A stretch of DNA of 64,000 nt from Scyliorhinus canicula (Eukaryota). The stretch spans positions 4,995,367 through 5,059,366 of the forward strand of contig NW_024055728.1 of assembly GCF_902713615.1 (NCBI RefSeq). Reading direction: 5' to 3'. Both the position numbers and the translations under genes were made by a program. Under the pieces are notes generated by a model. The model did not search any database, was not told where the DNA came from, and saw only the letters and a program-made list of their open reading frames with translations. Position 1 is the first letter of the stretch. The number at the start of each line of letters is the position of its first letter. Shown in pieces: positions 13,741-44,433 of the stretch.

Positions 13741-13850
13741 TCAGAATGAAATAACATTGCTTTCCACCAGCATTGTTGTGTTGTCCCGCTGGGTTGCAAC
13801 AGATGCGCCCTCAGGGTCAGGAGACTCAGAATGAGTACTGGAAGGATTTC
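13741..13850 (-). CDS. Candidate terminal coding exon ([15 protein letters not shown]...ESNVISF*)
   Basis: Phase-1 acceptor gagcag with a weak pyrimidine tract, Ser/Pro/Glu-rich open frame, TGA at 13741-13743. The stronger upstream acceptor ttgttcag would give an immediate stop instead. Confidence 0.45.
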
Positions 13851-16800
13851 CTGCTCGGTGTTTTACACTGAACAAGGATAAGCTTATTTGATGAATCAAC
13901 TCATTATTTGCGAAATGTAATTGTGCCGAATGACAACAGAAACTGACATTAACACGGTTCTGTGCCACATCCGGCTGGAATGGACTACATATACAGTAAT
14001 CATTTATCGTCACAATTATGAAGTTAATGTGAAAAGCCATTCGTCGCCACATTCCGGCGCTTGTTCGGGTAAGCTGGTATGGGAATTGAACCAGCGCTGC
14101 TGGCCTTATTCTGCATTGCTAACTAGCTATCTAACCCACTGAGATAAACCAGCCCCTTACATGAAATGAATTGAAATGAAATGGAAATCGCTTATTGTTA
14201 CAAGTAGGCTTCAAATGAAGTTACTGTGAGAAGCCCCCAGTCGCCACATTCCGGCGCATGTTCGTGGAGGCTGGTACGGGAATTCCCTGCAAACGACATG
14301 GTATGGGAATCCCCTGCACCCTCTCGCTTGCCCATTGCTGCCACATGGAACTCGGCTGTGGGACGCATCAAAGGCTTATCTCACCCAGAGTAGAGGCATC
14401 ACCACCAGAAATTGTCAGCGTTGAAAGATCAGCAGCAGCGAGATCGAGAAGTAAGTGTCGGCGCCTGGAGTCAACAGTTTCTGCCTCAATGTCATCATCA
14501 ACGTCTGTAAGCGAACAGAGAAGAGAATGGTAATTTTCACTGCAGCTAATTATACTTCTTGAATAATCAGGATGATTCCCTAGAATGGTAATCCACCAAC
14601 AAAGAGAAAGGCAGAGAGTGGACTATTTTGGTCTGCAGGATCAGTGAGTTTATCGATTGGAAAATCATTGTGCCACGTCAACTTTGCATTTTTATTTTGT
14701 GGTTTATTGTCACTGGATTCCAACGAATGACGGTAACATTTTGAGAGGTGGTGGCAGAGCGGTGTCATAGAATAGAATTTACAGTGCAGAATGAGGCCAT
14801 TCGGCACCTTACCTAAGGTCAACACCTCCACCCTATCCCCATAACCCAGTAACCCCACCCAAAACTAAGGGCAATTTTGGTCACTAAGGGTTATTTATCA
14901 TGTCCAATCCACCTAACTGCATATCGTTGGACTGTGGGAGGAAACCGGTGCACCCAGAGGAAACCGACGCACACACGGGGAGGAGGTGCAAACTCCACAC
15001 ACACAGAGACCCACGGCGGAATCAAACCTGGGACCCTGGAGCTGTGAAGCGATTGTGCTCTCCACAATGCTACCGTGTCACAACACAAATAGTTCTCTAG
15101 AACCCCAGGGTCATCGGTACATACCCGTTTTCGATCACCCGATGGCACAGAGTGAAATTTGAATTAAATAAATAATAGAAATTTAATGTCCAATGTGTAT
15201 TAAATAATCTGCTTCATTCCTGCCCCCTGTCCCATGAGGGAGAGCAATCAGCCACCTTGATCTGCTTTGCCGCACATGTGAATCTAGATTTAAATAATTC
15301 CGTTTAATCATGAATTCCCGCTAAAATTGTCAGGGCAGGCCCGTTCGGGATGGACAATAACATATGGTCGGGTCAGGGATAAATGAATGCAAGTCAAATA
15401 AATATCTGCGCCCACATTTCACTTCTCACTTCCTGGGGGAAAACTACATGAATGGAATGTTTTATATCTCTGTACAACATTCAGCGATCTCTATGAAGTT
15501 CATTTCGTCATAAAGTATGTTTGCCGATTTGCTTAAGTTAAATTAAAAACTTCTCCAGGATGTGGATCATTGCTCTTTGCGATATTTACATTCTTATTCT
15601 GGATTGAAAGTGTGAACATATCAACTAGAAATTGAGAATCCACCCATCGTGAACACTAGCCGATTGCCAGTTACCGTTTTCTGATTCAGAATCCGTGTCA
15701 CCCAAACTGTGACTGGTGTAATATTCGATCTGATTCAGGGAGTCAATGGAAGCAGAATCTGTTGAAGACAAAGGACAATGGATTATAATTGTATATATAG
15801 ATCACCTGGAAACACTTTAGTGGAAAACAACACAGATACATTGTGTTCCTTGGAGGAGAGATAACAATCATTTCACAGTGCCCATATAATTCCCTGGTGT
15901 TTGTGAATAAACAAGATGTTGGGAACAGTCACAGTGGGCAATTCAGTGAGAAGAGGAAGATTCAGCAGCATCAGATCAGGACAACCGGAGATAAACAATA
16001 CATTTAGCTGCAATCCTGTAATAGGCAGGATAACACATAGTGCATCCCAATTAGTAATGTAGTGTATTGTGTAACAGAAAAATATATATAATTTCAAATA
16101 TAACCCATTATTACAATATCCGTTTGCAGGCTTTCATTCTCCAGAATCATATCCTGACCCCAACGATCTCCCTCACTTTTATTTTAGAGCACTTAAATGG
16201 TGACTGGGGAAAGAATTATCTCCGGTAAAATCAGAAGAATTTTTTCTTCTCACGTCAGTTATTCTGGAATGCGCCCGTGGAGCATCTTTGCAATTGGTTT
16301 GCACAAGCCCCTGTTAGTTTTTATTTGAATTTGATAACATTCAGACCAGAACCGTAGCCAAATCTCCAAATGCTACCTAACAGATATTGTTTGGTGGTTC
16401 TGCTTAACGTCTTTAAATCACAATCACATCAATCTCGAAATAAATGCTTACGTTTGTTTTAATTTTGATGGTGTCGTTATCTGTACCTATATATTTAGTG
16501 TTTAGTATATTTGTACACCGAAATCACTTTGTTCAACAATCCAATTAGATTTCTCTCCAGCATTATGTAACATCCAGATTATTATTGCCAAGATGTAAAT
16601 CATTCAAAGTACGTATGTCGACATGCATTTGGTAATTGTACGTGAAGACTGCAAGTGTTTCATGTTGCATCAACAAGGTGTGTGTTGTTCACTGGTTTAG
16701 ATACATCAGGAAGCCATTGGGCTGAGGAAATGCAAATAAGAACAAACGCTCAGGTCGCTATTTACTAAGAAGTGGAACACAAAACACCCTTGCAGCAAAA

Positions 16801-19800
16801 ATGGGCAGAAACAATCTTCACCAATTCCATTGTTCTTCTCGTTGTGTACAGAACACTGAAATGACGCTGTTGCATACGAGCACTTTCAATGGTGTTACAA
16901 TTAAACAGTAACTTGTCCGGTGTATAGTGCATTTAAAATTGAAAATGCAAACCTGATGCACGGGTATGGATTGACTCCTTTCCAGGAGGGATATTGTCAA
17001 TTTCTTCATAAATTGCCGGTTCCAAAGCTACTGGTGAAACCCAGTCGCCAGTTACGACACCTGGTGGAATGAAAACGGAGCGTTTCATTTGTTGCATTGC
17101 ACCGCCTTTAGTATTTGTGAATGAAAATAAAGAAAGTTTCAAAGCGACGATAATCAAGAGACCAAAACAGTTAACTTGAATGTGATGGTATGTTATTACA
17201 TAATTTTATCCTGCGTGTCTGAGACATGGAGATACAACGAGTTGGAGAGTTCGCGAGCAAGGGAGAGAGAAAGGGAGATACATTTCGTGTCTCGGCGAGT
17301 GAACCAGTGACTGCCTGTGGGTGTCTGAGATTGAGTGCCGGTGCGAGTTACTGTTTTGTGTGAGTGGGAGAGCGAGCGAGAGCGGGAGAGAAAGATAGAC
17401 TGGCGTCGATGTCTCTGCAAGTGTGTGAGTGAGCACATATGTTTGTGAGGGAGCGACTGGCGATGTTTATGTCTATGTGCCTATTCGACAGAGAGCAGAA
17501 GAGAAAACAAGACACGAAGAGCGTGTGTGTATGTCCATCTGTGCAAGTAAGTCAGTGCGTGTGTGTGGGTGTACGTGAGTGTGCGTGTGAGTGTGTGTGC
17601 GTGTCTTTATGTGAGTGTAACTGTATATGTTGCTATTTTTGTCATCGTGCGAGAGGGAAAAAGAGATAACCTGTTCCCGAGTGTCNNNNNNNNNNNNNNN
17701 NNNNNNNNNNNNNNNNNNNNNNNNNNNNNNNNNNNNNNNNNNNNNNNNNNNNNNNNNNNNNNNNNNNNNNNNNNNNNNNNNNNNNNNNNNNNNNNNNNNN
17801 NNNNNNNNNNNNNNNNNNNNNNNNNNNNNNNNNNNNNNNNNNNNNNNNNNNNNNNNNNNNNNNNNNNNNNNNNNNNNNNNNNNNNNNNNNNNNNNNNNNN
17901 NNNNNNNNNNNNNNNNNNNNNNNNNNNNNNNNNNNNNNNNNNNNNNNNNNNNNNNNNNNNNNNNNNNNNNNNNNNNNNNNNNNNNNNNNNNNNNNNNNNN
18001 NNNNNNNNNNNNNNNNNNNNNNNNNNNNNNNNNNNNNNNNNNNNNNNNNNNNNNNNNNNNNNNNNNNNNNNNNNNNNNNNNNNNNNNNNNNNNNNNNNNN
18101 NNNNNNNNNNNNNNNNNNNNNNNNNNNNNNNNNNNNNNNAGGGAGACAGCGTTTCTGAGCGTTTCTCTGTGTGTGAATGAACAGGTTTGAGGAAATAATA
18201 CGATAATGTGTAACGAAGTAAATCTATGACTGCTTGTATATGTCTATGTGAGACAGTGTGAATTTCAGAGATAATATGTGCGTGTTGAAACGAGTATGTG
18301 TGACTTATTGTATGTGTGGAAGAGGGAATGAGTATGTTTTGGTGTGTGATAGAGTGTGAGTGAGAGGTAGTGTGCATGGGTATTTGTTGGTGTGTGTATA
18401 TGCACATGAGCAAATTAGTGAGACAGCGTGTACGTGAGTGAGTCATTTCATAAGTGCATGAGAGTGAGTGCGAGCGTGTGTATTTGTGTTTGTTTTCAGG
18501 AGAGATGAGTTATGGACGTGTGTGCAAGTGAAACTGCATGTGTGAAAACAGTCTCTGTGTGTAAGAGGCCGGGTGAGTGTGCTTGTAGCAGTGTCTGTAT
18601 GCGTGTGAGCGAGCATGAGGGACAAATATATAGATTTGGAGAGAGACCATTTGTACCATTAGACATGAATGAGTTAGTGAGTGTGTGCATGTGTGTATAT
18701 TCGTGCATGTGTGTGAATGCGTACATGAGTGAGTATATAACCAGGGGCTGGTTCAGCTCACTCAGCTAAATCGCTGGCTTTTAAAGCAGACCAAGCAGGC
18801 CAGCAGCACGGTTCGATTTCCGTACCAGCCTCCCCGGACAGGCGCCGGAATGTGGCGACTTGGGGCTTTTCACAGTAACTTCATTGAAGCCTACTCGTGA
18901 CAATAAGCGATTTTCATCTCGTTTTTGATATAGGGTACATGGGTGTGCGTACATGCGCACATATGTCTGTATATGCATACATGCATGTATATGTGGTACA
19001 TGTATGTGTATATGCATACATGTGTCTGTGTGTATGCGTACATATGTGTGTGTATAGGCGGACATGAGCGTGGAGATCTCTAACTGTGCAGGTCGTTTTT
19101 TGTACCATTGTATGAGAGAGATGTGTTCTGAATCTGTACATATTTATCTGAATCCAAAGAGATGACATATAAGTTAAAATGACTTAATTTAATATTCGGG
19201 AAAGATCGATTGGTTCTGATTGACATGGGAATATATTGGAAGAGACATTGACATAAACCGTGATTGATCGCTGACGACAGCATCAGGTGGGAAACACGAT
19301 TGAGGTGGTGATGTTGCCGAAAGTGACACATCTGCGTGAGAACAAATTTGTCCTTTACTTCGAACGGCAGGTTGTTGATGTTTGGGATATTAGTGCAATA
19401 ATTGCGTTAGGATGCGGAATAATCATTGACTAATTCAGCAAATTACAAATAATTGCCATATTGCAGATATAGTACATAGACATAGAACATAGAGCGCAGA
19501 AGGAAACCATTCAGCACATCGAGTCTGCACCGCCCACTTAAGCCCTCACACACCCTCCCCCCGTAACCTGGTAACCCCTCCTAACCTTTTTCAGTCAATA
19601 AGGGCTAGTTGTCATTGCCAATTCACCGCACCCGGACGTCTTTGGACTGTGGAAGGAAACCGGATGACCTGGAGGAAACCCACGCAGACACGGGGAGAAC
19701 GTGCAGACTCCGCACAGACAGTGACCCAGCGGGGAATCTAACCTGGAACCCTGGCGCTGTGAAGCCACAGTGCTAATCACTTGTGCTACCGTGGTGTTGA

Positions 19801-22800
19801 TGGATTCCGGTCAGGGAGCTCGAGGTTAGCAACCTTACCGACAACCTGCACTAGTGGAACGGATACACACGTATAAATGACCTAATTGAATAAAGGAAGA
19901 AGAGTGATTAGAATCGGATCACAGGAGCCAGAACGGTTTACTGAAATTTTCTGATCCAAGGCAGGAGCATCTTATGTACGGGCAGATTAACTGCGAACTA
20001 GAATTTGCACATTTAGGCAACTGAGTCGACTACTGACGTGAACAAAACCAATGAACAAAACCAGATTAAGATTTTAAATCAGCTTCAAACAAGGAGAAGT
20101 GACAGTCTTTTCAAATGGCCAATGAACTAAAGGTTGGTCTGTATATGAATCAATATGCGAGATCCAATATGAATGCACCAGGATAACTGCGACCTCACCT
20201 TTTCTATTTGACTTCTTCCGCATTACCAGCTGCAGTGCGATCAACTCACAGATTAACAGGACTCCCAGGGTAATGCAGATCACTACCGGGGTGTAAGTGG
20301 TTTCTGCTTCCTGTCCTTAATGAAAGGTTAGAAGACGATTTAACACAGGGACGCCAACTGATATTCTTAATGTTTCTAAAGATCTGAAGCCACACATATA
20401 ATCTTAAGAAATTATCAACAACAAGAAAACATCAACAAGAAAAAATCAATACTAGTAGGATGCTAACGCAAATACGAAGGATATGTGTTCGTAATAAGTA
20501 CCTGCAGCTGTGGGAGGAGATCTCTGCGGTAATTCTGGCCATGAGGAATGTATTATGCAAAAGTAATGGACAACACGTTATGAATTTCCTTGAAATAAAA
20601 CATGCGTTTTATTTTTCCGAAGAGTTATATCAAACACCACAAATTCCAAGCCTCCCGTTCCGCAACAACGCCCACCATCCCTTGTGCCGTACCCTTACCA
20701 GAACAAATCACACTAGCATCTTCCTTGTGATGACAATCAGGTTGATTTGCGGCTGAGGATGGACAGTCAGAGAGGATGGATTCGCTTCCGGTGCACCTCA
20801 CCTCATCGAGCCAGACAGCACCGTCACCCGTGCCGAACGCGGCCCCACCCGGAGCCTGTAGAGCCAGGCCACAATCCAGCTGCCTGCAGACAACATCAGC
20901 ATCGGCCATATCCCAGGAGTCATCACATACAGTGTCCCAGGTGTTATTACACAATATCTCCACTCTCCCGGAACACCTGGTGTTACCTCCAACCAGCCGC
21001 ACCTTCAGCCCGGAACCTGGTAAAGAGATCAGTTATTATTGTCCACATAATAAAAGCCAGGAATACAATTCAAACGAAGTAGATAAAATACAAAATTCCA
21101 AATACCTGTTTGATCAGTGCATTGCCGTGAACTGTGGGGCTCCGTCTCTATCACACTGGATTCTGTTGCGAAAAGAAACATGATGATTCTATTACATACC
21201 AATGTTTACAATGACATCCGAACATCGATCAATGTCTTTCCTGACCTGCTCAGAACTCTGGCAACACCAGGTTGTAGCCCAACAGGTTTATTTGGAATCA
21301 CTTGTTTTCGGAGCGCAGCTACTTCATCAGGGAAGTCATCATCTCTCCCTGATGAAGGAGCTGCGCTCCGAGAGCTAGTGATTTCAAATTGGACTTTAAC
21401 CAGGTGTTGCAAGACTTCGTACTGTTTCCAGTCCAGTCCCAGGCCGGTACTTTCACATAATTTTCTTACCTGAACAGACAACACTTGCATCTTCTCGGTG
21501 ATAACAGTTGTGTTGCCCCCAGGGGTTTGACTGACACTGCCATAGTGTTGACTCATGTGAACCACAGTCTATCTCATCGAGCCAAATCGGACCGGATCCT
21601 TCACCGAATGAGCGAGCGTCATAGTTAATGGACATGTGGGGACCGCACTGTAACTGTTTGCAGATCACTTCAGCATCGCGCTTATCCACATTGTCAGAAC
21701 ACAATGTTCCCCAGATCCCATTGTAAAATATTTCCACTCTCCCCTCACAGCGATGCTTTCCATTCACCAGCCGAAGCTCTTTGTGCTCTATCAATTAAAC
21801 ACACACACACACATGGAGTTAGATTGACTGGTGAATGTTGAACCTACATTGAGTCACACTATACGAATTGCAGTCGTTGTGTTCAGCATTTGCTTTCATT
21901 ACTTCATATCGGTAACAGCAAATGAGCTGAAATTTAATTATACAATCAAGAATGATCGGCACGAATCCCCTCAGCAAACCTTTGCACGACCTCCCGCCGT
22001 TGATCATTTGAAAACTTTGCAGGATGGTTAGCCGGGGAATGCAGCGAAGCTCGGCAGGATGATTATCAACATGATTTCGACCAGGCTCGACACTCTGACT
22101 TATCAATAGAACTTGTTGAAAAATGTTTACAAAACAATGGTAACTTCGGCGAGCAAAATATTGGACCTGGATTGTCCCTGTGGTCGCCGAAAGTGTACAT
22201 TGACATCGAACATTTGGACCATCAATCGGAAAAATTATGTCAAGCTGTAACTGAGGAAACTGAGATGTGTATTCAATGCACAAATGCACAAAATACACAA
22301 AAAACAATAATACACACCAAAGGCCAGGTCAATTGTGAATTTTTGTGGAGCTGTTAAAGATGCTTCATACTCATTGGAAAATAACAGTCGACATTTCGCA
22401 GAGAAAATGCATGTTGTTATACAGAGGGATCTATAGCCCCCCCCCCCTCCGCCCAATTAGTGGAGTTAAATCTATGTTAAGTATGAAAACATTTTGCGCA
22501 CTGCCCAGAGAACCCGATCAAATTAGTACTTGGAATGGGTAACCTTTGTGGAGAATGGTGCCGATGTATTTGAGGAGAACTTAGAACAGTACATAGGAGA
22601 GACAATGAGGAGTTTAAGGAAACATCGAGAGGGGTTTATTAAGTAATATTTTGGGGACAGAGGTGTGCACATGGGATGATCCAAATTGCCAGTTTATCTT
22701 CTCTTTGTTCTTACTTTCTCTCTATCTCTCGCACTCTAATTCACTAAAATATCTTCTGTTCGAATTTTCACTGGGCACTGAAGAATATTCAACTACTGAG

Positions 22801-24408
22801 ATCACATTTACCTGAGCACATGACCTTCACATCTTCTTTATGACTGCAGTCATGACTTCCCCGTGATGCTTTGGGACAATCCCAGAGGAAAGATTCGTTC
22901 CCGAAGCAATCCAGCTCATTCAGCCAAATTGGCCCAGTGCCTGGTCCACAAGAAGCAGGAAGTGTCAGCTGCAATGCATCTCCACAACCCAACTGTTTGC
23001 AAACCAGTCGAGCGGCGGTTAAATCCCAGGAATCATCACAAACTGAGCCCCATTTCTTATTGTAATAAACCTCAACACGGCCAGCACATGGGCTTCCACC
23101 GTCAGCAAGCCTTAGCTGCTTGTGTTCTGATAGAAAGAAATACAGTAAAACATGTTATTCCTCATGTGTATTTCATCATTCAATTTGAACGATATGATGT
23201 GCAGCTCAACTATTTCTGATCCGCCTCTGACATTCGAATAGATAGATTACACAGACCATCGATCTATACTTACCGAAAAGAAAGATTGCTGAATATACAG
23301 ACATTTATAATGCTCCTCCACCTGTCCTCGGCGATGGTCTGTTTCCCACTTTGCCTCTGTGGGCTAAATTCATTTGTTTTTAATATAAATTTGCAATACC
23401 CAATTCATTTTTTTCCAATTAAGTAGCAATTTAGCATGTCCAATCCGCCTGCCCTGCATATATTTGGGTTGTGGGGGCGAAACCCACACAAACAAGGGAA
23501 CAATGGGCAAACTCCACAGGAACAGTGACCTCGAGCCGGGGACGGCGTCGTGAGGCAGTAGTGCGAACCCACTGCTCCACCGTGCTGCCTTGTGGGCTGC
23601 ATTCTGGTTGTACAGTTTTACCAGCAACTGCATGTGTTCTTATTAATCACGCCACTTACACTCTTTTGATTTAACAACTTCCAATGTTCCTTTTTGCTGC
23701 GCATTTCTGTCACGTGAACTTCACGTGATCTCTCCACTCAGTAGTTCACATTGGGAAAAATCAGAAATTTCTCAAAATATACAGCATCTGTGAAGAGATC
23801 ACCGGAGTTGAACTTTCAGGCCGTGACCTTCTCTAGAAACTCAACCCATCTACTGCTGAGATGTTCATCAGAGCCTTAATGTTATGTACTGGGGGATCGT
23901 GAAAGCTCGGTAAAAGGAGAGAGTATTTACACTTAGTGGAGAATATAGAACTACGTGGATATTTTAAATTAAGTGTAATCCACGTATCTAACTGAAGTTC
24001 ACGAGTCGTTGGGAATTTCTATCTGTAAAGAAGCGGAGTGTTTGTATTTTTATGACAGAGATAGATTCTATCTTGATAAACAAGGAGGTGAAATGGTATC
24101 TGAACGAGGCAGGAGGCAGCTATAAGACCATTATTGATCTTATTAAATATCAGCGCGGACTCGATGGACCGGGTTGCCGACTCCTCCTAATTGGTCTGTT
24201 TCCATGTTGACTGATATTCCGCTGTACAGTGCAGTGGAGGGGGAATGGACGGGAGGGGGGGGGGGAGTGATGGCGATATCGAGGGTAGTAGAGGCAACGA
24301 GAGCAAATAAGTGAGAGGCGGGGAGAGATACAAAGATCGAAGAGAGAGAGCGAGAAATAGAGAAAGCGAGAGAGAGCGAGAGAGCGACCGAGAGGGAGAG
24401 AGGGTGAA

Positions 24409-24440
<32 letters not shown>

Positions 24441-27400: not shown

Positions 27401-28029
27401 TAATTTTTGGGTGAAAACAGCAAGTGCGCTGGGAATTTGTAAAATGCAGATGGCATCGCAGAAGTAAAGAGCGTCCTATCAGTTTGTGTAAGAATAATAA
27501 GAGAGTGCAACATGACCGAAAGTAGTTTGAAAGTGCTGATATACAAAAATACTGTAGGATAAATTATGTTTTTTGACGCTTCAGCGCAGTTAGCCACTTT
27601 CAACTTGATTCCATGGCGCAGGTGGGCCTGTTTAGCTCAGTGGGCTAGACAGCTGGTTTGTAAAGCAGAACAAGACCAGCAGCGCTGGATCCATTCCCAT
27701 ACCAGCCTCCCCAAACAGGCGCCGGAATGTGTCGACTAAGGGATTTTCTATGTAACTTCATATTTGTGACAATAAAAGATTATTATTATGATGGGAGCTT
27801 GACTCAACCAGGTGTTGGATTATGTTAACGCCATAGGCCAGTGGACGAATAGAGTGTTTGAAGTAAACAAAATAGGAAAATCTGCCAAAGGAATATTTCA
27901 TGTGGCTAATACAATTGTGAACATAATAAAATTTAGATGTTTCAGAGGAGAAAAGCGCAATATAAAGAAATAAGAGCAAAACAGGAAAATACAGACAGGC
28001 AGGTATATAGATAGAAAGACAGAAGACAG

Positions 28030-28065
<36 letters not shown>

Positions 28066-34000: not shown

Positions 34001-37000
34001 TGTTTCCCAGGTTGCACCATTACTGATCTCCAGTCTCCCCGAGCAAAAGTTGTGTCCCGATTCAAGTCGAGGAATTAAGTGGGCTGACAAACAATATATC
34101 AATCGAATTATAGTGATTAGTATATTAATACAAGTCTGATGTATTATAATCAATCATGTTTATTGCTCAAGCTACTTCAATTCTTATCCAATACCTTATG
34201 TGACCTTCAGCCTCGAATGTTATTGTTTATCCAGTGAGTTCACGCTTCTGATATTTGCGTTATTTGTTGTAAACTCAGATATTTGGCTTCGGTTTATTTT
34301 TATACAAGCGCTATGTCACAAGTGAGAACTCGGTGAATTGTCGACTAGAAGATGCGGATGAAATTATTCCACTCTACCTCTGATTTTCTAGCTGCCACGT
34401 TACCTTCAACAACTGCCCGCCCCATCCATGTTCTCCTCCAGAAAACAGATGCAGGCAAGGGGTCGCAGGAAACTCCCTCACCCATCCTTCATTTAAGGAG
34501 GCGGCACAGTAGCCCAGTGGTAGCACTGTGGCTCCTCAGCTCCAGGGTGCCATGTCCGTTTCCGAACTTGGGTAACTGTACGGAGTCTGTGCGGAGTCTG
34601 CACGTTCTCCCCGTGTCTGCGTGGATTTCCTCCGGTTTCCTCCCACAAGTCCCGAAAGATGAATTGGACATTCTTAATTCTCCCTCTGTGTACCCGAACT
34701 ATCGCCGGAATGTGGCGACTAGGGACGTTTCACAGTACATTAAATGCAGTGTTAATGTGAGCCTGTTTATAGATTTTCGTCGAATTTACAGTGCAGAAGG
34801 AGCTCATTCAGCCCTTCGAGTCTGCACCGACTCTTCGAAAGAGAACCCGACCCAGGTTCCACACCTTCACCCTATCCCCACAACCCAGTAACCCCACCCA
34901 ACAGTAAGGGCACTTTTGGACACTAAGGGCAATTTATCATTGCCAATCCTCCTAACCTGCACATCTTTGGACTGTGGGAGGAAACCGGAGCGCCCGGAGA
35001 ATACCCACGCACACACGGGGAGGATGTGCGGACTCCACACAGACAGTGACCCAAGCTTGAAGCGAACCTGTGAGCCTGGAGCTGTGAAGCAATTGTGCTA
35101 ACCACAATGCTACTGTGCGGCCTCCTTGTGACAATAAAGAATTCTGCTGTCACTAAAGAATACAAAGAATACTGTCCGAACACATTGTCTCCCCCACGAT
35201 TAACCCACCTCATCACAGTATTTGACTTTAAGTCAATGCTACACATTTATTTTGAATAATCAGGGAAATAAATATATTTCCATCCTCTTTTACAATGTTC
35301 AGGCCCTTGAGAAAACTAACCCCTATCGCAGTGTGGGAAGAGGCAATTCTAACATTTCCTTACCGGAACACATAATCTTGACATCTTCATGATGCCCACA
35401 GTCATGTTCTCCCCAGGGGTCTGAGGAACAATTCCAGAGAAATGGTTCGTCACCAGAGCACTGCACCTCATCCAACCAAATTGGTCCCGATCCTGGTCCA
35501 GAAGAAACATGGGACGCATCCATTGCATTTCCACAACCGAGTTGCCGACAAACCACTCCTGTGTCAACATTGCCCCATTCGTCATTACAAACTGTGCCCC
35601 ACTGTCCACGATAAAATATCTCCAATCGTCCAGCACAGCGGCTTCCACCTTCGGACAGTCTTAACTGAAGATTTTCTGTCAGAGAACGCAACAGGATTAT
35701 ACGTTTCACAAACGGTAAATGCTTCAGTCAATATCAGCTTAACCATCCAGAAAAAATAAAAATTATGTATCACGTCCACGAATGGGTATGAAGCTGCATC
35801 CCCAGCATCTGCCTACACGAACCTATTGCTTAGAAATGGTTCTCTGTCTCGGCTGATCTATATTGTTCTGATGTCCAAAATGGGCCTCTTGCCACACCAC
35901 GTCGCTTACATTCACTGACTACAAGCAAATCCACCCATTCCTCCAGTTTTCACTGTAATCTATTATCTTCAGAAACACCTGCTGTCGCCCAGTCCATTTC
36001 GGAAAATTTGGGGGCAAATACAGTTTTGCAGAATTTAGTATTGTTTCAATAAATCTTTCTCTCATGTTGATGGCAGTTGAATTTAGGTCACTGCTCGAGC
36101 AGAAACATTATCTTCTTTTTAAATTCCAATCAATCAAACAGTTGTCCAGAAGAAGGAGTTCTGCAAATTACGCCCCACTCGATTATTGACCGAAAAATAA
36201 AACATTTTTTTCAGATGCTGCGGACTGTTATACGCGTTCAATTCCTCGAGATTCGATCTACATCGTGTTTCGGCCTGTCTCTGTGTATGGAAACATTATA
36301 TAACATGAAATTCTCTAAAGAGATCCAATCAATTGTGTGGGTTTAGTGAACTTAATCTCTCTAGTACTTAATAAAATTCCTCGAGTAGTGAACACTGTAA
36401 GAAGTCTTACAACACCAGATTAAAGTCCAACAGCTTTGTTTCAAACGCGAGCTCAGGTCCTGGGAAAGGAGAAGTGCATCGAAAGGTTTTGTTCGAAACA
36501 AACCTGTTGGGTTTTAACCTGGTGTTGTAAGAGTTCTAACTGTGCTCACCCCAGTCCAACGCCTGGCATCGCCAAATCGAGTAGTGAACAACTGTTAACT
36601 GTTGCATATTTCTGAAGTAATTGACTGAAGCCTACATATTAGTGATTTGTGTATCTGAGCCATTAGAACATGCTGCGCATTTCTATCTGTCCTTCCTAAA
36701 GGGCTCATAGATTGTCTGCTTGAAACGTTGCATTCCCTCTGATGAGTTATCTTCGTTTCGGATATTGGAGCGGAATCCTGATTATGTGAAGCACTGAGGA
36801 TGACATGTGCAATCTAAGGATGACATATACAATGTGGGAATGGTATGTCCAATCTGAAGATGACATGTACAATGTGAGGATGACATGTACAATCTGAAGA
36901 TGACATGTACAATGTGAGGATGACATGTACAATCTGAAGATTACATGTACAATGTGAGGATGACATGTACAATCTGAAGATGACATGTACAATCTGAAGA

Positions 37001-40000
37001 TGACATGTGAAGTATTAAATTGTTGTGAATTGCAGGATCCAGATATCCTGGAGGTGGTGATGTTATCATGAACCTGCTGTGCTTGTCCTGCTAGTCGATA
37101 TAAGTCGAGATATTCGAAGAATTTACTTGGCAAAGCACGGTAACTGAATGTGGCCGACCTGCTAATGACGAACCATTATCCGAATATATCGCTGTTTCTT
37201 ATTTATTAAAACATTACTAATCCGGTACTGTGGACAGCATTTTATTAGTCGTGTATCAGGTTATGCTGGAGAGCTTTTGGTAAACCAGGTGTTGAAGTGC
37301 TCGTCACAGACTATTCAGATTCTGACGAGCTTCATGAGCCTTCATTTTGTCATCGATGAGGAATACAAGACAGTGGGATGGGGCTACTGTACCTGGGCTC
37401 GGATCCCAGACATCAGGCATAAGACTTGAAGAACCCAAGTTCAAATCCCACAATGATATATGATGCCATTTGATTCCAATTAAATCTGGAATTAAATGTC
37501 AGATAATTACACTATCATAAAATTCATCTGGTTCACTAAATACCCCTCAGGAAATTTGCCACACTCACCTCGTCTGCATGCACCCGGATCCACAATAATG
37601 AAATTAACTCTTAAATCCTATCTAAAATGCACTAGCGAAACAATCAGGTCAAGGGGTAATTATTTATGCACAATTAAATTCTGAACCCGGCCAACGATAC
37701 AAAAATCGCATGAATAAATAGAACAATCCCACGACATGGAGGCTTCAGATAGACTGAGTATATAGAATTTGTTACTGGCTGCATCTGCGTGATTTAGTGA
37801 CGTTAGTTCGGATATTGTGTTTTGTCAAATACCGGCTGTAATACATAGAGAACATTTTCTGAACACTATTTCCTCGTGATTGTGAGTCTCTTTAATCTTT
37901 TTTTTAGCAATTTAGATTACCCAATTATTTTTTACAATTACGGATTTAGCATGGCCAATCCAACTACCCTGCACATCTTTTGAGTTGTTGGGGCGAAATC
38001 CACGCGCTCACGGGGAGAATGTGCAACCTCCACATGGACCGTGACCCAGTGCCAGTACCGGGATTCGAACCCGGATCCTCAGCTCCGTAGGCAGCAATGC
38101 TAACTACTGTGCCACCGTGCTGCCCTGGGCCTTTTTAATCTTAGTTGGCCTTATGCTTACTGGGTATACTGCCTTCATGTTAATCACAAATAATTTAATT
38201 TTTCCTTTGCATCTGCGTGGGTTTCCTCCGGGTGCTCCTGTTTCCTCCCATTGTCCTAAGATGTGCAGCTACGGTGTGTCCGTGTTTACGGGGAAGTGGG
38301 TCGAGGTGGGTGCTCTTTAAGAGGCTCAGTGCACTTTCGATGGGCCTACTGCCCTCCTTCAGCACTGTCAGAAGTTCTTGATTAACTTTCAGAACGCAAA
38401 CTGAGCCTCGTTAAGTTTGTTATTATTGACTGCCAACTGGAATAATGTCAATGTTACATTGCAACAAGCTGTGAGGATCGGGGTGTAACGGTGAACAGTA
38501 ATTTATCGGATATGATCTTCTCTACTTTTGACAAACGAGATACATCTCGCCTATTTTCCACATTGTCAGTTAAAAGTCAAAATCGCAGCTATACTGGGAC
38601 AGGAGGATCAGTGGGGCAGTGATTCCGGCGCACAGTTCTTCACTAATTTGTCCCTATTTATTCTCGAGTCCAGGCCCTTAACAATGTCAGATCACAGAGC
38701 ATGCTGTCTCATATAGAACATATAACATAGAACAATACAGCGCAGTGAAGGCCCTTCGGCCCACAATGTTGCACCGACATGGGAAGTCAAAAACTAAAGG
38801 CCATCTAACCTACACTATGCCATTATCATCCATATGCTTATCCAATAAACTTTTAAATGCCCTCAAAATTGGCGACTTCACTACTGTTGCAGATGGGCCT
38901 CACGGTAGCATGGTGGTTAGCATCAATGCTTCACAGCTCCAGGGTCCCAGGTTCGATTCCCGGCTGGGTCACTGTCTGTGTGGAGTCTGCACGTCCTCCC
39001 CGTGTGTGCGTGGGTTTCCTCCGGGTGCTCCGGTTTCCTCCCACAGTCCAAAGATGTGCGGGTTAGGTGGATTGGCCATGCTAAATTGCCCGTAGTGTAA
39101 GGTTAATGGGGGGATTGTTGGGTTACAGGTATACTGGTTACGTGGGTTTAAGTAGGGTGATCATTGCTCGGCACAACATCGAGGGCCGAAGGGCCTGTTC
39201 TGTGCTGTACTGTTCTATAGGGCATTCCACGGCCTCACAACCCTTTGCGTAAAAAACCTACCTCTGACGTCTGTCCTATATCTATTACCTCTCAATTTAA
39301 GGCTATGTCTCCTCATGCTAGCCACCTCCATCCGCGGGAGAACGCTCTCCCTGTCCACCCTATCTAACCCTCTGATAATTTTGTATGTCTCTATTAAGTC
39401 GCCTCTTAACCTTCTTCTCTCTAACGAAAACAATCTCAAGTCCATCAGCCTTTCCTCATAAGATTTTCCCTCCATACTAGGCAACATCCTGGTAAATCTC
39501 CTCTGCACCCGTTCCAAAGCTTCCACGTCCTTCCTATAATGAGGCGACCAGAACTGTACGCAATACTCCAAATGCGGCCGTACCAAAGTTTTGTACAGCT
39601 GCAACATGACCTCATGGCTCCGGAACTCAATCCCTCTACCAATAAAGGCCAACACACCATAGGCCTTCTTCACAACCCTATCAACCTGGGAGGCAATTAT
39701 CAGGTATCTATGTACATGGACACCGAGATCCCTCTGCTCATCCACACTGCTAAGAATTTTGTCATTAGCCAAATTATCCGCATTCCTGTTATTCTTTCCA
39801 AAGTGAATTACCTCACACTTCTCTACATTAAACTCCATTTGCCACCTCTCAGCCCAGCTCTGCAGCTTATCTATATCCCTCTGTAACCTGCAACATCCTT
39901 CCATACTGTCTACAACTCCACCGACTTTAGTGTCGTCTGCAAATTTACTCACCCAACCTTCTGTGCCCTCCTCAAGTACATTTATAAAAATGACAAAAAG

Positions 40001-43000
40001 CAACGGCCCCAGAACAGATCCTTGTGGTATGCCACTCGTAACTGAACTCCATTCTGAACATTTGCCATCAACCACCACCCTCTGTCTTCTTTCAACTAGA
40101 CAATTTCTGATCCACATCTCTAAATCACCCTCAATCCCCAGCCTCCGTATTTTCTGCAATAGACGACCGTGGGGAACCTTATAAAATTATTTACTGAAAT
40201 CCATATACACCACACCAACTGCTCTACCCTCGTCTACCTGTTCAGTTACCTTCTGAAAGAACTCAATAAGGTTTGTGAGGCATGACCTATCCTTCACAAA
40301 ACCATGCTGACTATCCCTAATCATATTATTCCTATCTAGATGATTATAAATCGTATCTCTTATAATTCTCTCCAAGACTTTACCCACAACAGACGTGAGG
40401 CTCCGGCCTATAGTTACCGGGGTTATCTCTACTCCCCTTCTTGAACAAAGGGACCACATTTGCTATCCTCCAGTCCTCTGGCACTTTTGCTGTAGCCAAA
40501 GATGACATAAAAATCAAAGCCAAAGGCTCAGCAATCTCTTCCCTGGCATCCCAGAGAATCCTAGGATAAATCCCATCAGGCCCCGGGGACTTATCTATTT
40601 TCACCTTGTTCAGAATTGCCAACACTTCTTCCCTACGCACCTCAATGCCATCTATTCTAATAGCCTGTATCTCAGCATTCTTCTCCAAAACATTATCTTT
40701 TTCCTGAGTGAATACTGACCAAAAGTATTCATTTAGTATCTCGCTTATCTCCTCAGCCTCCACACACAACTTCCCACCACTGTCCTTGACTGGCCCTACA
40801 CTTATCCCAGTCATTCTTTTATTCCTGACATACCTATAGAAAGCTTTTGGGTTTTCCTTGATCCTACCTGCCAAAGACTTCTCATGTCCCCTCCTTGCTC
40901 GTCTTAGCTCTCTCTTTAGATCCTTCCTCACTTCCTTGTAACTATCAAGCGCCCCAACTGAAACTTCACGCCTCATCTTCACATGGGCCTTCTTCTTCCT
41001 CTTAACAAGAGATTCCATTTCTTTGGTACACCACGGATCACTCGCTCGACCCCTTCCTCCCTGCCTGACTGGTACGTACTTATCAAGACCATGCAATAGC
41101 TGTTCCTTGAACAAGCTCCACATATCCAGTGTGCCCAATCCTTGCAGCCTACTTCTCCAACCTACACATACTAAGTCATGTCTAATGGCATCATAATTGC
41201 CCTTCCCTCTGCTATAACTCTTGCCCTGCGGGGTATACTTATCCCTTTCCATCACGACCGTAAAGGTCACCGAATTGTGGTCACTGTTTCCAAAGTGCTC
41301 ACCTACCTCCAGATCTAACACCTGGCCTGGTTCATTACCCAAAACCAAATCCAATGTGGCCTCGCCTTTTGTTGGCCTGTCAACATATTGTGTCAGGAAC
41401 CCCTCCTGCACACATTGTACAAAGAACGACCCATCTAATGTACTCGATCTATATCTTTTCCAGTCAATATTTGGAAAGTTAAAGTCTCCCATAACAACTA
41501 CCCTGTTACTTTCGCTCTTTTCCAGAATCATCTTCGCCATCCTTTCCTCTACATCCCTTGAACTATTAGGTGGCCTATAGAAAACCCCCAACAGGGTGAC
41601 TTCTCCTTTCCTGTTTTTAACCTCAGCCCATACTACCTCGGAAGAAGAGTCCCCATCTAGCATCCTTTCCGCCACCGTAATACTGTCCTTGACTAGCAGG
41701 GCCACACCTCCCCCTCCTTTTTTTGCCCCCTTCTATGAGCTTACTAAAACACCTATGGAGTGAATCGCCGTAAGTCAGCATATTACAAATATCATCTTCT
41801 CACCTATTGCCCTTTGATAAACAAGGATCATTCCAAACTATTCCTTGTCAAATAAATTAACTTCAAACTAAAATGAAATCTTTTCAATTAAATATGGGAG
41901 TAGCTGGTACCGAATACCCTTTGGCCATTAACATACAAACTACCTCACTTCCATCCTTCACTGCAGAGTATTTAAAACTGTTGCTTCACAGCTCAATGGT
42001 CCCCAGGTTCGACTCACGGTTTGGGTCACTGTTTGTGCGGAGTCCGCACGTTCTCCCCGTGTCTGCGTGGGTTTCCTGCAGGTGCTCCGCTTCCCTCCAA
42101 ATGTCCGTGCGCCTCCAGGATAAAAGTTAGCCTAATTGCGGAAGTACAGAGTGGCCATTGAGGCCTCAATAAATCCAGTTGGCCTGTATAAATTTTCTAA
42201 ATGGTGGCGAGTTAATTTACAGACATGTTTTAATGTGAGGACAAGGGACGGCCTGATAGAAAAATTTCCTCTGGGCATATTCACGGGACATTGTGGCTGC
42301 TGAATCGGGAATGAAAATGAAAATTCATCGCAAGACCTGAGGATTAGTGAATCCAATTCCTATAATTTCAATGCCAATTACACGTTGTTTTTCTCGAGAA
42401 ATGTGGTCAATTTATTAATAAAATTCGTCATATATTGTGAACCAGGGGACGTGCGGAGAAGGACCGATATAAGGCAATTGGCATCAGAATCTAATAGGAC
42501 TGGAAGAGACACGTATTAATGATCCCAGTAGTTTGATCGTTGGATACATTCGCTGAGGGTCTGGTCCGGGCTTTTCATGGGCAGTGCGGGCAGACACTTG
42601 CAAGACTGCAGAACAAGAAACTAGATTCAAGCTTGCTAAATTTTACTTGCAGCGAGAGAGTTTCGAATTGACGGTTTGATCGACTAATACCCTCGTTTAA
42701 ACAGTGCTGTCGAAACAATGAACACAGGCGCTCAGGCGAGCTGCAAATAAATATCCTCTGTTGATTGCTACATTGAAGAATTCAGGGCTGGATTAAGATG
42801 GCAACATTTCTAGTGGCGCAACTCAATGAATGCGGCTTTCGGTGAAGTCCAACTGGAATCATGTTCTTTCTGTTTTGGAAATGTGCCGAGTTACAGATTG
42901 CGACTGAACCCATTGGAAGGCATTTGTCAATTCTATGTGATAGTGTCACAACCGGTGGCAGTGGAAACATACTATATTTCAGGTGAAGGAACCTTGTACC

Positions 43001-44433
43001 TCTGCCAGGCCAGTTCTTCATAACGTTCAGGACTGACATGACGAACGAAGAGAGAAGCAAAGACCATTATGGATTGCAAGATATTTCCAGATTTTTAGCT
43101 TTGTTTGCAACCTGAGCAAGTACAAAATGTAAGGGGCTGAATGTCAATTTCATCTTCACGTTATCACTGATTTGTGTGGTTGGAAATCGTTGCTCCTCTG
43201 GCGCCAGCAAATGTTTGCCTGCATCTGATTCATCCCAATATGCTTTTAAGTAATGCCACTTATTTGCGTTCTTCAGGAAGGAATATATGTTTCTTATTTG
43301 ACAAGTTACCTGAAATGGCTAAATGAAGCTGTGCGGGAGGATTGGATGTATTTGTGTTTTGGAAGAGAGCGGTGAAGACTTAATTGAACCATCAAAATGT
43401 ATGAGGTGTATGCTGAAGAGTTTCCAATGCGCAGATGTTAGTAGACATGAAAGATACAGTAAAATGATTGGTGGAACGATTAGAGTGACGTACGCATCTG
43501 GACCTCAATATCTGTGACACAAATCCTGGATAGAGTTAACATGCACCGGCATTTCGATCTCGATACATGGAGATGTGAATTGGTCTTAAATTCACAATGT
43601 ATTATTCAGAGTGTTAAGTACATCAAGGGTCAAATGGCAGCCTTGTGTGTGTTAAATGTTTTAATGTTTCTTACGGTAGCTTTCATTGGGAAGCGGACGG
43701 GAAGCGGACAATGGATAGTTTGTTTTAAAAAAAAGAAAATGCGAGTTTCTGTATTCAATGCAAATGCTAACGCAAAACAATGCCACATAACGTGACAATA
43801 AAGTACATTACCTGACGGGCTATCTTCGCTGTTCCCAGGTTCATCTGAAATGAGATGCCAAAAATTAGAGTTGGCTGTGGTCAGAAATTATTGAAACTTT
43901 CACGCAGAATTGTCACACATGGAGGAAAATTTAAAATGGCAACTTCCACCAATCTGTGGACTGAATTGCAGAAACGGATTTGTGATCTACTTTGCATTAC
44001 AGGTCATATTGTTTAGACTGTGTTTTTAAAAATCAATTGGTCAATGAGCCTTAAGCACTTGATCCCGGGTCAAACCAAGAAGGGATAATTTATTAATATG
44101 ATGCAAACTCAAAGAAATGGAATAGTGAATTCCGAGGCCAGGAGAAAGCCAATGCCGATGTAAGGCAGAGTTATATACAGTGTTGCATAGAACTAACTTG
44201 GGCGGGCACATGGTTTCCCCGTTCACAGAGGCAAATAGAAATAATTACTTTTCCTATCCCACTCTCCTCGAGTCTCAGATTCCAATAGATACTGAAAAAT
44301 CTTACTGAAATTTACATTGAATAGTTTGTTCCAAACCATTATTTAGAATGTTAGTAATCCAGTTTAACTTCTCTCATCCGATATCAGCAATGAAAGGAAA
44401 GCAGCACACAGTAATATAAGAAACAATTTTAAA
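13741..44433 (-). CDS. Gene span of a CD163/WC1-like group B SRCR type I membrane receptor (7 SRCR + stalk + TM + tyrosine-containing tail); possibly a frameshifted allele or young pseudogene
   Basis: Seven exons of 312-318 nt, each one SRCR domain with AG/GT boundaries and phase 1-1, followed by stalk, TM and cytoplasmic exons in colinear order on the minus strand. The 5' and 3' terminal exons are less certain. Confidence 0.9.
14005..14290 (-). mobile_element. Two adjacent copies of a short (about 175 bp) tRNA-like SINE
   Basis: Match to copies at 18744, 27624 and 30705 (gtcgccacattccggcgc core). Confidence 0.8.
14385..14504 (-). CDS. Cytoplasmic exon 3
   Basis: 120 nt, strong acceptor ttctcttctctgttcgcttacag, donor gtgaga, phase 1-1; [40 protein letters not shown]. 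Confidence 0.7.
14766..15080 (-). mobile_element. HE1-type V-SINE
   Basis: catagaatagaatttacagtgcaga tail, V-domain and head. Confidence 0.88.
15150..15400 (-). mobile_element. Decayed Deu-domain SINE
   Basis: Reverse-complement similarity to the copies at 46861 and 37395. Confidence 0.45.
15675..15758 (-). CDS. Cytoplasmic exon 2
   Basis: 84 nt, tgtcctttgtcttcaacag/gtaact, phase 1-1; [28 protein letters not shown]. Confidence 0.75.
16953..17060 (-). CDS. Cytoplasmic exon 1 with AIYEEID tyrosine motif
   Basis: 108 nt, ccag/gtttgc, phase 1-1; [36 protein letters not shown]. Confidence 0.85.
17240..19070. repeat. Degenerate (GA)n/(GT)n/(TA)n low-complexity tract containing an assembly gap (N 17686-18139)
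   Basis: Dinucleotide-rich sequence around 454 Ns. Confidence 0.85.
18744..18917 (+). mobile_element. Short tRNA-like SINE (about 175 bp)
   Basis: ggggctggttcagctcactcagctaa...ggttcgattt (B box)...gaatgtggcgacttggggcttttcacagtaacttcattgaagcctactcgtgacaataa. Confidence 0.85.
19475..19795 (-). mobile_element. HE1-type V-SINE
   Basis: catagaacatag tail, V-domain and tRNA head. Confidence 0.88.
20199..20315 (-). CDS. Transmembrane exon ([39 protein letters not shown])
   Basis: cttctaacctttcattaag acceptor and gtgagg donor, 117 nt; about 22 hydrophobic residues followed by a basic stop-transfer RKKSNRK. An alternative in-frame acceptor would start the exon at 20303. Confidence 0.88.
20502..20534 (-). 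CDS. 33-nt stalk micro-exon ([11 protein letters not shown])
   Basis: ggccag|AATTACCGCAGAGATCTCCTCCCACAGCTGCAG|gtactt; phase 1-1, Pro/Ser/Thr-rich, lies between SRCR7 and the TM exon. Confidence 0.7.
20699..21016 (-). CDS. SRCR domain 7 exon (membrane-proximal, 9 Cys)
   Basis: 318 nt, cag/gtaagg; [35 protein letters not shown]...[12 protein letters not shown]. Confidence 0.95.
21250..21445. repeat. Hairpin (inverted-repeat) element, possibly Penelope-derived
   Basis: caacaccaggtt...tcggagcgcagctacttcatcaggga / tccctgatgaaggagctgcgctccga...aaccaggtgttg; related copy at 36398. Confidence 0.75.
21470..21787 (-). CDS. SRCR domain 6 exon
   Basis: 318 nt, tag/gtaaga; [32 protein letters not shown]...[12 protein letters not shown] with 8 Cys. 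Confidence 0.95.
22812..23126 (-). CDS. SRCR domain 5 exon (9 Cys)
   Basis: 315 nt, cag/gtaaat; [34 protein letters not shown]...[11 protein letters not shown]...[12 protein letters not shown]. Confidence 0.95.
23372..23590 (-). mobile_element. A-tailed short V-SINE with about 14-bp TSD
   Basis: tgtgggctaaattc (23358-23371) versus tgtgggctgcattc (23591-23604). Confidence 0.85.
24449..25566 (+). mobile_element. 5'-truncated CR1 LINE flanked by (GA)n tracts and a gap (N 25567-25742)
   Basis: [35 protein letters not shown] and RTRGH motifs, one in-frame stop, 3' tail. Confidence 0.93.
25743..26050. repeat. (GA)n-rich microsatellite (a similar tract lies at 24240-24448)
   Basis: Purine dinucleotide run. 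Confidence 0.9.
26612..26926 (-). CDS. SRCR domain 4 exon (6-Cys variant)
   Basis: 315 nt, tag/gtaata; [35 protein letters not shown]...[11 protein letters not shown]. Confidence 0.95.
27624..27790 (+). mobile_element. Short tRNA-like SINE
   Basis: gggcctgtttagctcagtgggctagacagc...gccggaatgtgtcgactaaggg...gtgacaataaaag(att)n. Confidence 0.8.
28005..28101. repeat. (TA)n/(GATA)n microsatellite
   Basis: Direct inspection. Confidence 0.9.
28250..31225. mobile_element. Nested CR1 cluster: old + CR1, containing a younger + CR1 (29037-30985), itself interrupted by a minus-strand CR1 (29250-30580) and a SINE (30705-30888)
   Basis: RT motifs on both strands; the host reading continues across each insertion. 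Confidence 0.8.
31266..31580 (-). CDS. SRCR domain 3 exon
   Basis: 315 nt, cag/gtgagt; [49 protein letters not shown]...[12 protein letters not shown] with 8 Cys. Confidence 0.95.
32035..32220 (+). mobile_element. Short V-SINE
   Basis: ggcagcatggtggcg...ggttcgatc...V-domain. Confidence 0.85.
32330..33330 (+). mobile_element. Decayed CR1 3' portion
   Basis: SKFAGDTK and [14 protein letters not shown] remnants plus a CR1-type tail. Confidence 0.75.
33770..34083 (-). CDS. SRCR domain 2 exon carrying a 1-nt deletion frameshift near 33856
   Basis: 314 nt, cag/gtgagt; [20 protein letters not shown]...SFDCKG, then the domain end ([10 protein letters not shown]...[12 protein letters not shown]) continues in another frame; the first frame stops at TAA 33842-33844. 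Confidence 0.92.
34500..35123. mobile_element. Two tail-to-tail V-SINEs (+ 34500-34765 with the alternative tail; - 34770-35123 with the CR1 tail)
   Basis: Heads at both outer ends and a V-domain in each. Confidence 0.85.
35364..35675 (-). CDS. SRCR domain 1 exon
   Basis: 312 nt, cag/gtaagg; [34 protein letters not shown]...[12 protein letters not shown] with 8 Cys. Confidence 0.95.
36398..36575. repeat. Hairpin element related to the one at 21250
   Basis: gtaagaagtcttacaacaccagattaaagtccaacagctttgtttc ... gaaacaaacctgttgggttttaacctggtgttgtaagagttctaac. Confidence 0.8.
36796..37010. repeat. 20-bp minisatellite, about 10.5 units (gatgacatgtacaatctgaa / gatgacatgtacaatgtgag)
   Basis: Visible tandem units with alternating variants. 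Confidence 0.95.
37395..37720 (+). mobile_element. Decayed Deu-domain SINE
   Basis: gttcaaatcccacaat...ctggttcactaa...ggaaatttgcc...aactcttaa. Confidence 0.6.
37900..38127 (-). mobile_element. A-tailed short V-SINE with 9-bp TSD
   Basis: tttaatctt at 37891-37899 and 38134-38142. Confidence 0.85.
38712..41755 (-). mobile_element. Relatively young 5'-truncated CR1 (endonuclease to tail) with a few frameshifts and a V-SINE inserted in its 3' end
   Basis: [47 protein letters not shown] and FADD motifs in ORFs 40380-41705, 40187-40459 and 39215-40159; tail at 38712-38760. Confidence 0.95.
38895..39216 (+). mobile_element. Full-length young HE1-type V-SINE inserted antisense in the CR1
   Basis: Highly similar to the copy at 1889-2225; interrupts the CR1 coding end. 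Confidence 0.92.
43812..43844 (-). CDS. 33-nt N-terminal spacer micro-exon ([11 protein letters not shown])
   Basis: tctcatttcag|ATGAACCTGGGAACAGCGAAGATAGCCCGTCAG|gtaatg; phase 1-1, open frame, joins in frame to SRCR1. Confidence 0.6.
44369..44433 (-). CDS. Candidate signal-peptide exon ([18 protein letters not shown]...)
   Basis: Pyrimidine-rich acceptor tttctcccatcattgtaccgtcag followed by a hydrophobic h-region-like run, upstream of the micro-exon. The donor is uncertain (weak A|gttaaa, or a G|atgaga that looks like a mutated gtgag) and the ATG exon is not securely identified. Confidence 0.3.

Follow-up and report, generated by a model that had tools for sequence, protein, structure and literature searches.

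We analyzed a stretch of 64,000 nt from the shark Scyliorhinus canicula (contig NW_024055728.1), here called the window, which most probably carries an intact, transcribed gene of the CD163 family of group-B SRCR proteins, from its WC1/SCART1 (CD163c-alpha-like) branch. The gene is located on the minus strand, from about 57.3 kb down to 13.7 kb of the window, and would encode a type I membrane glycoprotein of 953 aa. From the N- to the C-terminus, the predicted protein consists of a signal peptide, a spacer, seven SRCR domains (D1 to D7), a short proline-rich stalk, a transmembrane (TM) helix containing a Glu, and a cytoplasmic tail of about 147 aa. A first-pass annotation of positions 13741-44433 had proposed a shark member of the CD163/WC1/SCART family with seven domains in a different arrangement. 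This proposal was supported by the assignment of domains to the clades b, n, e, and d' in a per-domain tree and by the homology of the tail, and can be refined to the WC1/SCART1 branch. Among the lineage co-receptors of gamma-delta T cells, WC1 and SCART have been studied best.

Gene model and transcript evidence

The model comprises 15 coding exons separated by 14 introns, all in phase 1. Its coding sequence of 2862 nt is uninterrupted once a single read-supported base is added to the D2 exon. The first-pass annotation had likewise given phase 1, with 13-14 exons. The exons are listed below in the order of the gene (window positions, all on the minus strand).

57291-57339, minus: coding part of exon 1, predicted from homology and frame, with the start codon, the signal peptide MMLQSFLILFLLQLLN and one further base; phase-1 GTGAGT donor
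43812-43844, minus: spacer micro-exon, 33 nt, phase 1-1, predicted from homology and frame
35364-35675, minus: SRCR D1 exon, 312 nt, 8 Cys, duplicate of D5 type; Pfam E 7e-33; RNA joint
33770-34083, minus: SRCR D2 exon, b-like, 314 nt as assembled but 315 nt by the reads of all runs; RNA joints at both borders
31266-31580, minus: SRCR D3 exon, type b, VEVLxxxxW motif; Pfam E 2e-29; RNA joint
26612-26926, minus: SRCR D4 exon, type n, 6 Cys, without C2 and C7; Pfam E 1.5e-27
22812-23126, minus: SRCR D5 exon, 9 Cys, in the position of type d; Pfam E 1.6e-33
21470-21787, minus: SRCR D6 exon, type e; Pfam E 1.4e-33
20699-21016, minus: SRCR D7 exon, type d', membrane-proximal, 9 Cys; Pfam E 1e-32
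20502-20534, minus: stalk micro-exon, 33 nt; phase-1 AG/GT borders, collinear with the xDLPPxxSPSTSAG stalk of sharks
20199-20315, minus: TM exon, Glu in the helix, basic stop-transfer sequence MRKKSNRK; tblastn 62-70% identity to shark homologues
16953-17060, minus: tail exon A, YEEI motif; tblastn 56-61% identity to shark homologues
15675-15758, minus: tail exon B, IEYYT motif; tblastn 63-77% identity to shark homologues
14385-14504, minus: tail exon C, VDDDIE in the DYDDVE region; tblastn 34-43% identity, collinear with homologues
13741-13850, minus: tail exon D with the stop codon (13743-13741); phase-1 CAG acceptor, frame open to the stop

The seven SRCR loci were found by tblastn with SRCR-like open reading frames (ORFs). 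All seven exons (312-318 nt) have pyrimidine-rich AG acceptors, GTAAG or GTGAG donors and phase-1 borders, and each of them matched PF00530 (E 1e-27 to 1e-33), D2 in two pieces. Each SRCR domain is encoded by a single exon with phase-1 borders, as the first-pass annotation had stated, and the seven domains, the stalk, the TM helix and a tail close to the proposed 150 aa were all present. It had also named 8 Cys as a defining feature of group B; the number is not uniform here, with counts for D1 to D7 of 8, 8, 8, 6, 9, 8, and 9. No eighth SRCR exon was detected in the full 64 kb by a six-frame scan with a hidden Markov model (HMM).

The exons outside the SRCR domains were placed with the help of shark homologues. 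These came from a pool obtained in a search with D7, which contained the collinear Pristiophorus protein P0068, and from a tail-targeted search that added about 20 shark proteins. The D7 search among representative proteins was ranked by summed multi-domain score, so that its top entries were long DMBT1-like proteins and not the nearest relatives; it served as a pool for tblastn. The closest relatives are about 20 shark proteins, all from elasmobranchs, with the same SRCR-TM-tail layout and 62-80% identity per domain. That D7 continues into the TM and tail exons here is predicted from homology and frame. The least certain exon is tail exon D, for which the C-termini of the homologues are weakly similar, if collinear.

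The signal exon was found by tblastn with the leaders of the Carcharodon and Heterodontus homologues, lies outside of 13741-44433, and keeps the frame into the spacer exon. Splicing of the signal exon directly to D1 was rejected, since T+AA at the joint would form a stop. The RNA contigs described below imply that the exon preceding D1 ends in CAG. The best in-frame candidate ending in CAG/GT was 43844-43812, which has a good acceptor and fits the RPGNSQxDPSE spacer of the shark homologues. Both the signal exon at 57339-57291 and the spacer at 43844-43812 are likely to be correctly positioned. The first-pass annotation had set the 5' limit of the gene, with a spacer exon, at 44433. The open stretch at this position has no ATG, is 65 nt long, ends in GAA instead of the required CAG, and in phase 1 gives a stop after the acceptor. 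It was discarded. Scanning of 35.7-52 kb for an ATG followed by a hydrophobic stretch and a phase-1 donor revealed no credible signal exon.

Reads from four runs of one organism, which belong to three studies, were aligned over positions 31250-36500: X9 and X10 (RNA) and X1 and X5 (DNA). As assembled, the D2 exon of 314 nt contains a frame change with a stop near 33855-33843. Due to this length, the Pfam match of D2 was split, one frame covering positions 3-70 of the profile and a second frame positions 74-100. All four runs showed an extra base (G) after 33854 at full depth, and apart from this base X9 had no mismatch to the window over the D1-D3 exons. With the extra base, D2 comprises 315 nt and reads as in the shark relatives. 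We concluded that the frameshift in D2 is an error of the assembly and not the lesion of a pseudogene; a single missing base would make the gene look like one.

The contigs of X9 and X10 covered exons only and had joints at 31579/80 to 33769/70 and at 34083 to 35364, with CT..AC ends that correspond to GT..AG on the strand of the gene. The joints D1-D2 and D2-D3 were absent from the DNA runs X1 and X5. This identified X9 and X10 as RNA and showed that the splice sites used for D1, D2, and D3 coincide exactly with those of the model. On the 5' side of D1, the RNA contigs carried an additional 117-156 nt ending in CAG, which stem from outside of 35679-36500. One X9 contig extended 419 nt past D3, consistent with D4 and a part of D5, beyond the aligned stretch.

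The same runs also revealed sequence variants. At 31412, 33796, and 35522-35523, alternative letters were present at full depth in X10, X1, and X5, and X9 was identical to the window. On the strand of the gene, these lead to Y to C in D3, M to R in D2, and M to W in D1. Synonymous variants occurred at 31381 (X10, X1, and X5) and at 35548 (X5 only). This looks like non-synonymous allelic variation within the SRCR domains, although a near-identical paralogue may also be the source.

Domain types, tail homology and alternative placements

The names given automatically to the shark relatives alternate between 'DMBT1-like' and 'M130-like'. Since these names are inconsistent, family placement was tested directly by a per-domain maximum likelihood tree of 102 domains. 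It included bovine WC1, SCART1 of macaque (Macaca P0253), Tasmanian devil (Sarcophilus P0109), and spiny mouse (Acomys P0285), WC1-like proteins of turtle and platypus, gar sequences, three shark relatives, two mammalian DMBT1 proteins in which Pfam detects CUB, and a turtle protein labelled SSC5D. A protein named 'M130 [Pteropus]' (P0299) had been considered as the CD163 reference, but proved SCART1-like in the pairing of its domains and devoid of a TM helix, and was dropped.

D3 was sister to the b clade (support 97/83), and D2 was placed just outside the b clade, within the clade of b and c (100/99). D4 grouped together with the fourth domains of the shark sequences and with SCART1 domain 5, which is of type n (98/97). 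D4 and SCART1 domain 5 share a pattern of 6 Cys, both lacking C2 and C7. D6 fell into the e clade (100/98), which also holds domains 5 and 10 of WC1 and domain 7 of SCART1, and D7 into the d' clade with WC1 domain 11 and SCART1 domain 8 (88/92). D5 and D1 formed a shark-only clade (97/94) that was unplaced on the backbone, in which D1 paired with domain 1 of Mustelus P0176 (99/90). None of the domains grouped with DMBT1 or with the SSC5D-labelled domains, so that the check on domain grouping named by the first-pass annotation came out in favor of its proposal: the DMBT1 domains formed a closed clade (100/97) without a shark member, and the turtle domains with the automatic SSC5D label formed a clade of their own, likewise without a shark member. 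In the scheme of Herzig et al. 2010 (PMC2906472), type n is diagnostic of CD163c-alpha/SCART1, type a is diagnostic of WC1, and e-d' is the membrane-proximal pair before the TM helix. Under this scheme, the shark order b-like, b, n, x, e, d' is collinear with b-c-n-d-e-d' of SCART1. The names under which the shark family is found in the databases point to the wrong family.

The tail supports the same placement. About 32 residues past the TM helix it contains AIYEEIDN, which is invariant in the shark relatives and fits the motif Y-(Q/E)-(D/C/E)-(I/L). This motif is common to all WC1 and CD163c-alpha tails and is lacking in CD163A and CD163b (PMC2906472). The sequence IEYYT in tail exon B is of the LxYYT type that occurs in WC1-like tails, among them those of turtle and camel. 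In HHalign, the profiled tails of the shark homologues matched a profile of WC1/SCART tails with a probability of 96.2% (E 2.1e-9) over 76 columns, which were collinear through YEEI, YYT, and YDDVE. The tail of the gene studied here was excluded from the shark profile; its exons A-C align to the profiled homologues. A local tail-HMM search in a small set gave weak matches to camel and sheep WC1 (E 7e-4 to 0.1). It was the profile comparison that established the tail as homologous to WC1/SCART tails.

The Glu within the TM helix (LLICELIAL) was found in all shark relatives examined, as ICELIAL, ICEFIAL, or IVEFTAI. It is absent from the helices of WC1, SCART1, turtle, platypus, gar, and frog, which share xC(I/L)xLGxLL. 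The Glu could be a pairing site for a basic TM residue of a partner protein.

The first-pass annotation had compared individual domains to human CD163, and this comparison stood only in part when solved structures were used. As proposed, D3 had its best match in SRCR5. D2 matched SRCR5/6. D4 had been likened to the 6-Cys domain SRCR8, but its best match in CD163 was SRCR7, and its counterpart by tree support and Cys pattern is SCART1 domain 5. For D7, the assumed resemblance to domain 9 was seen in the shorter CD163 chain 8h7j (563 residues), in which D7 and D5 matched the last domain, by position SRCR9; in full-length chains both matched SRCR7. As D1, D5, and D6 also picked SRCR7, like D4 and D7, mapping of the best-matching stretch to CD163 discriminates poorly between domains.

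Several observations weigh against an intact WC1/SCART1-type receptor. No a-like exon, which would be diagnostic of WC1, was present between the signal exon and D1 or elsewhere in the 64 kb. None of the domains in the window fell into the m or l clades of SCART1, and there was no further SRCR exon that could represent them. D5/D1 and D2 lie outside the tetrapod d and c clades. The DYDDVE motif of most shark relatives is replaced by VDDDIE, and the tyrosine is lost. The tree was built without bona fide CD163A, CD163L1, CD5L, and CD6, and its SSC5D reference is named automatically only. The reads covered 31250-36500, with D1 to D3, whereas the signal, spacer, stalk, TM, and tail exons are predicted from homology and frame.

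The gene might instead encode a secreted mucosal agglutinin of the DMBT1 or SSC5D type, as the NCBI and UniRef names of the closest proteins suggest. In addition, D1, D6, and D7 reached 123-127 bits against single solved DMBT1 domains, more than against the solved single SRCR5 domain of CD163. These names are automatic, however, and 'M130-like' is used for the same family. Downstream of D7, the gene encodes a stalk, a TM helix, and a tail of 147 aa instead of CUB or ZP domains, the tail is homologous to those of WC1 and SCART, and the DMBT1 clade is closed to shark domains. We regard a secreted agglutinin as very improbable. A scavenger receptor of macrophages like CD163A (M130), rather than a co-receptor of lymphocytes, would agree with human CD163 being the top solved-structure match for every domain, with the best match of D3 to SRCR5, and with the name 'M130-like' of some shark relatives. 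The top rank of CD163, however, reflects summed multi-domain scores. D4 is of the n type, which is lacking in CD163A (tree; PMC2906472), and the tail carries the YEEI of WC1/SCART, whereas CD163A tails have no significant identity to WC1/SCART tails and carry YREM (PMC2906472). We regard a CD163A-like receptor as unlikely.

A decaying copy of the shark SRCR multigene family would account for the frameshift of D2 in the letters of the window, for the lack of an a-type exon, for VDDDIE in place of DYDDVE, and for the lack of an ATG in a model confined to 13741-44433. Against such a pseudogene, the frame of D2 was restored by all four runs from three studies, including an RNA run otherwise identical to the window, and D1, D2, and D3 were correctly spliced in RNA. 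The 953 codons, starting with an ATG and a signal peptide, are read through to the stop without interruption, and a first domain of D1 type is also found in the Mustelus relative. We consider it quite improbable that the gene is decaying, and prefer an intact gene of the WC1/SCART1 branch.

Introns, gaps and repeats

Two gaps of the assembly are located within introns of the gene:

17686-18139, no strand: assembly gap in the intron between the TM exon and tail exon A; homologues continue from the TM helix into tail A
25567-25742, no strand: assembly gap in the intron between D4 and D5, beside an (AG)n-like array; homologues continue from D4 into D5

Both gaps are flanked by degenerate simple repeats, and P0068 aligned unbroken across both of them with the frame kept.

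A nearly intact long interspersed nuclear element (LINE) is present directly upstream of the signal exon (57901-62129, minus) with an ORF of 331 aa (endonuclease) followed by an ORF of 1056 aa (reverse transcriptase). The promoter of the gene would therefore lie within the approximately 560 bp between the LINE and the signal exon. Fragments of LINE endonuclease or reverse transcriptase were found in the introns and downstream of the gene at 39215-41705 (minus), 24511-25485 (plus), 29515-30295 (minus), and 12072-12662 (plus). Of these, the copy at 39-42 kb has the orientation of the gene and is situated in the intron that separates the spacer exon from D1.

The intronic stretches 31954-32305, 34418-35121, and 36354-36500 reached summed word depths of 1e4 to 2e6 in DNA and RNA runs, and are very high-copy, transcribed SINE-like repeats (SINE, short interspersed nuclear element). 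They are probably the reason for the small word shares (0.05-0.10) of many RNA runs at the locus. A tandem array at 36750-37175 (minus), in the intron upstream of D1, has a translation that repeats a unit of about 20 aa and is probably a minisatellite without coding function.

Proposed role and comparison with known receptors

Phosphorylation of tail tyrosines by Src-family kinases is required for co-stimulation of the T-cell receptor (TCR) by WC1 (PMC2906472; PMC8356672). By analogy to WC1, polyanionic ligands, of microbial or other origin, may be bound by the SRCR ectodomain of the shark protein. If the protein clusters with an antigen receptor, Src-family kinases would phosphorylate the YEEI tyrosine and thereby enhance lymphocyte activation, so that the protein would act as a pattern-recognition receptor and a co-receptor at the same time. 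All of these functions, like the type of cell that would express the gene, are inferred.

An evolutionary study of WC1 and SCART (PMC2906472) covered only mammals and chicken, and no description from cartilaginous fish was found in the searchable literature. The family as such is known, predicted shark proteins are already present in databases under other names, and the gene is a further member. The shared domain cassette and the homologous signalling tail place the WC1/SCART type of receptor in cartilaginous fish. As a tentative and rather doubtful extension, the full WC1/SCART module, consisting of the b-n-d-e-d' cassette and a tail with YEEI, LxYYT, and YDDV, may have existed in the ancestor of jawed vertebrates; sharks would use it in a multigene family of hybrid co-receptors, in which the shark-specific, invariant TM Glu couples directly to a basic TM residue of a TCR chain, an adaptor, or a similar partner. 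Such coupling, if true, would be a mode of association not known for mammalian WC1 or SCART. The gene also provides a concrete candidate marker for shark T-cell subsets in single-cell data.

Among the known systems, DMBT1 (gp340/salivary agglutinin) has tandem group-B SRCR domains as well, one per exon, and a motif of the VEVLxxxxW type, which is the bacterial-binding motif of DMBT1 SRCR domains and is carried by D3 of the shark protein. Unlike the latter, DMBT1 is secreted, without a TM helix or tail, and has SID spacers as well as CUB and ZP domains; in the tree, its SRCR domains stood apart as a clade of their own. SSC5D, a soluble protein, has five SRCR domains and a C-terminus of mucin-like character, and lacks the TM helix and tail found here. 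CD163A (M130) has nine SRCR domains, including the diagnostic type k, and a short YREM tail; the shark protein has seven domains and a tail of the WC1/SCART type, and its best-matching stretches in solved human CD163 were confined to SRCR5, SRCR6, and SRCR7, apart from the last domain of 8h7j matched by D5 and D7.

The shark proteins listed as 'DMBT1-like' or 'M130-like' (Pristiophorus P0068, Carcharodon P0171/P0167/P0168, Heptranchias P0159/P0163, and Mustelus P0176) share the same stalk, the TM helix with Glu, and the tail motifs, in addition to their high identity per domain. Most of them start with a 6-Cys first domain that is lacking here, and in many of them D6 and D7 are separated by a linker exon, which is also absent here. 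The D1 type of first domain is seen only in P0176. This protein of Mustelus asterias has six domains without a D2 type. Its gene model, which begins within D1 and has no signal peptide, may have missed the micro-exon and the leader, as was the case for the locus studied here.

WC1 consists of 11 domains in the order a-b-c-d-e-d-b-c-d-e-d', starting with a and without n, whereas the shark protein has no a domain and contains n. Both share the domain types b, e, and d' and the tyrosine motif YEE(I/L), which is required for co-stimulation by WC1. The LxYYT motif of camel and turtle WC1-like tails and the occurrence of a multigene family among the shark relatives are further similarities.

Compared to SCART1/CD163c-alpha, a group with SCART1 and SCART2 of mouse and SCART1 of human, the shark protein has seven domains instead of eight, no m or l, a first domain that is a duplicate of D5, a b-like D2 in place of c, and a D5 outside the d clade. 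The IEYYT motif and the Glu in the TM helix are additional to what is found in SCART1, and the YDD motif of the SCART1 tail is kept in the shark relatives, while its tyrosine is lost in this gene. Like SCART1, it is predicted to be membrane-bound in type I orientation, each of its group-B SRCR domains is encoded by a single exon, its tail has a motif Y-E-(E/D)-I about 40 residues past the TM helix, and its C-terminal cassette follows b-c-n-d-e-d', with D3 corresponding to b, D4 with its 6 Cys to n, D6 to e, and D7 to d'.

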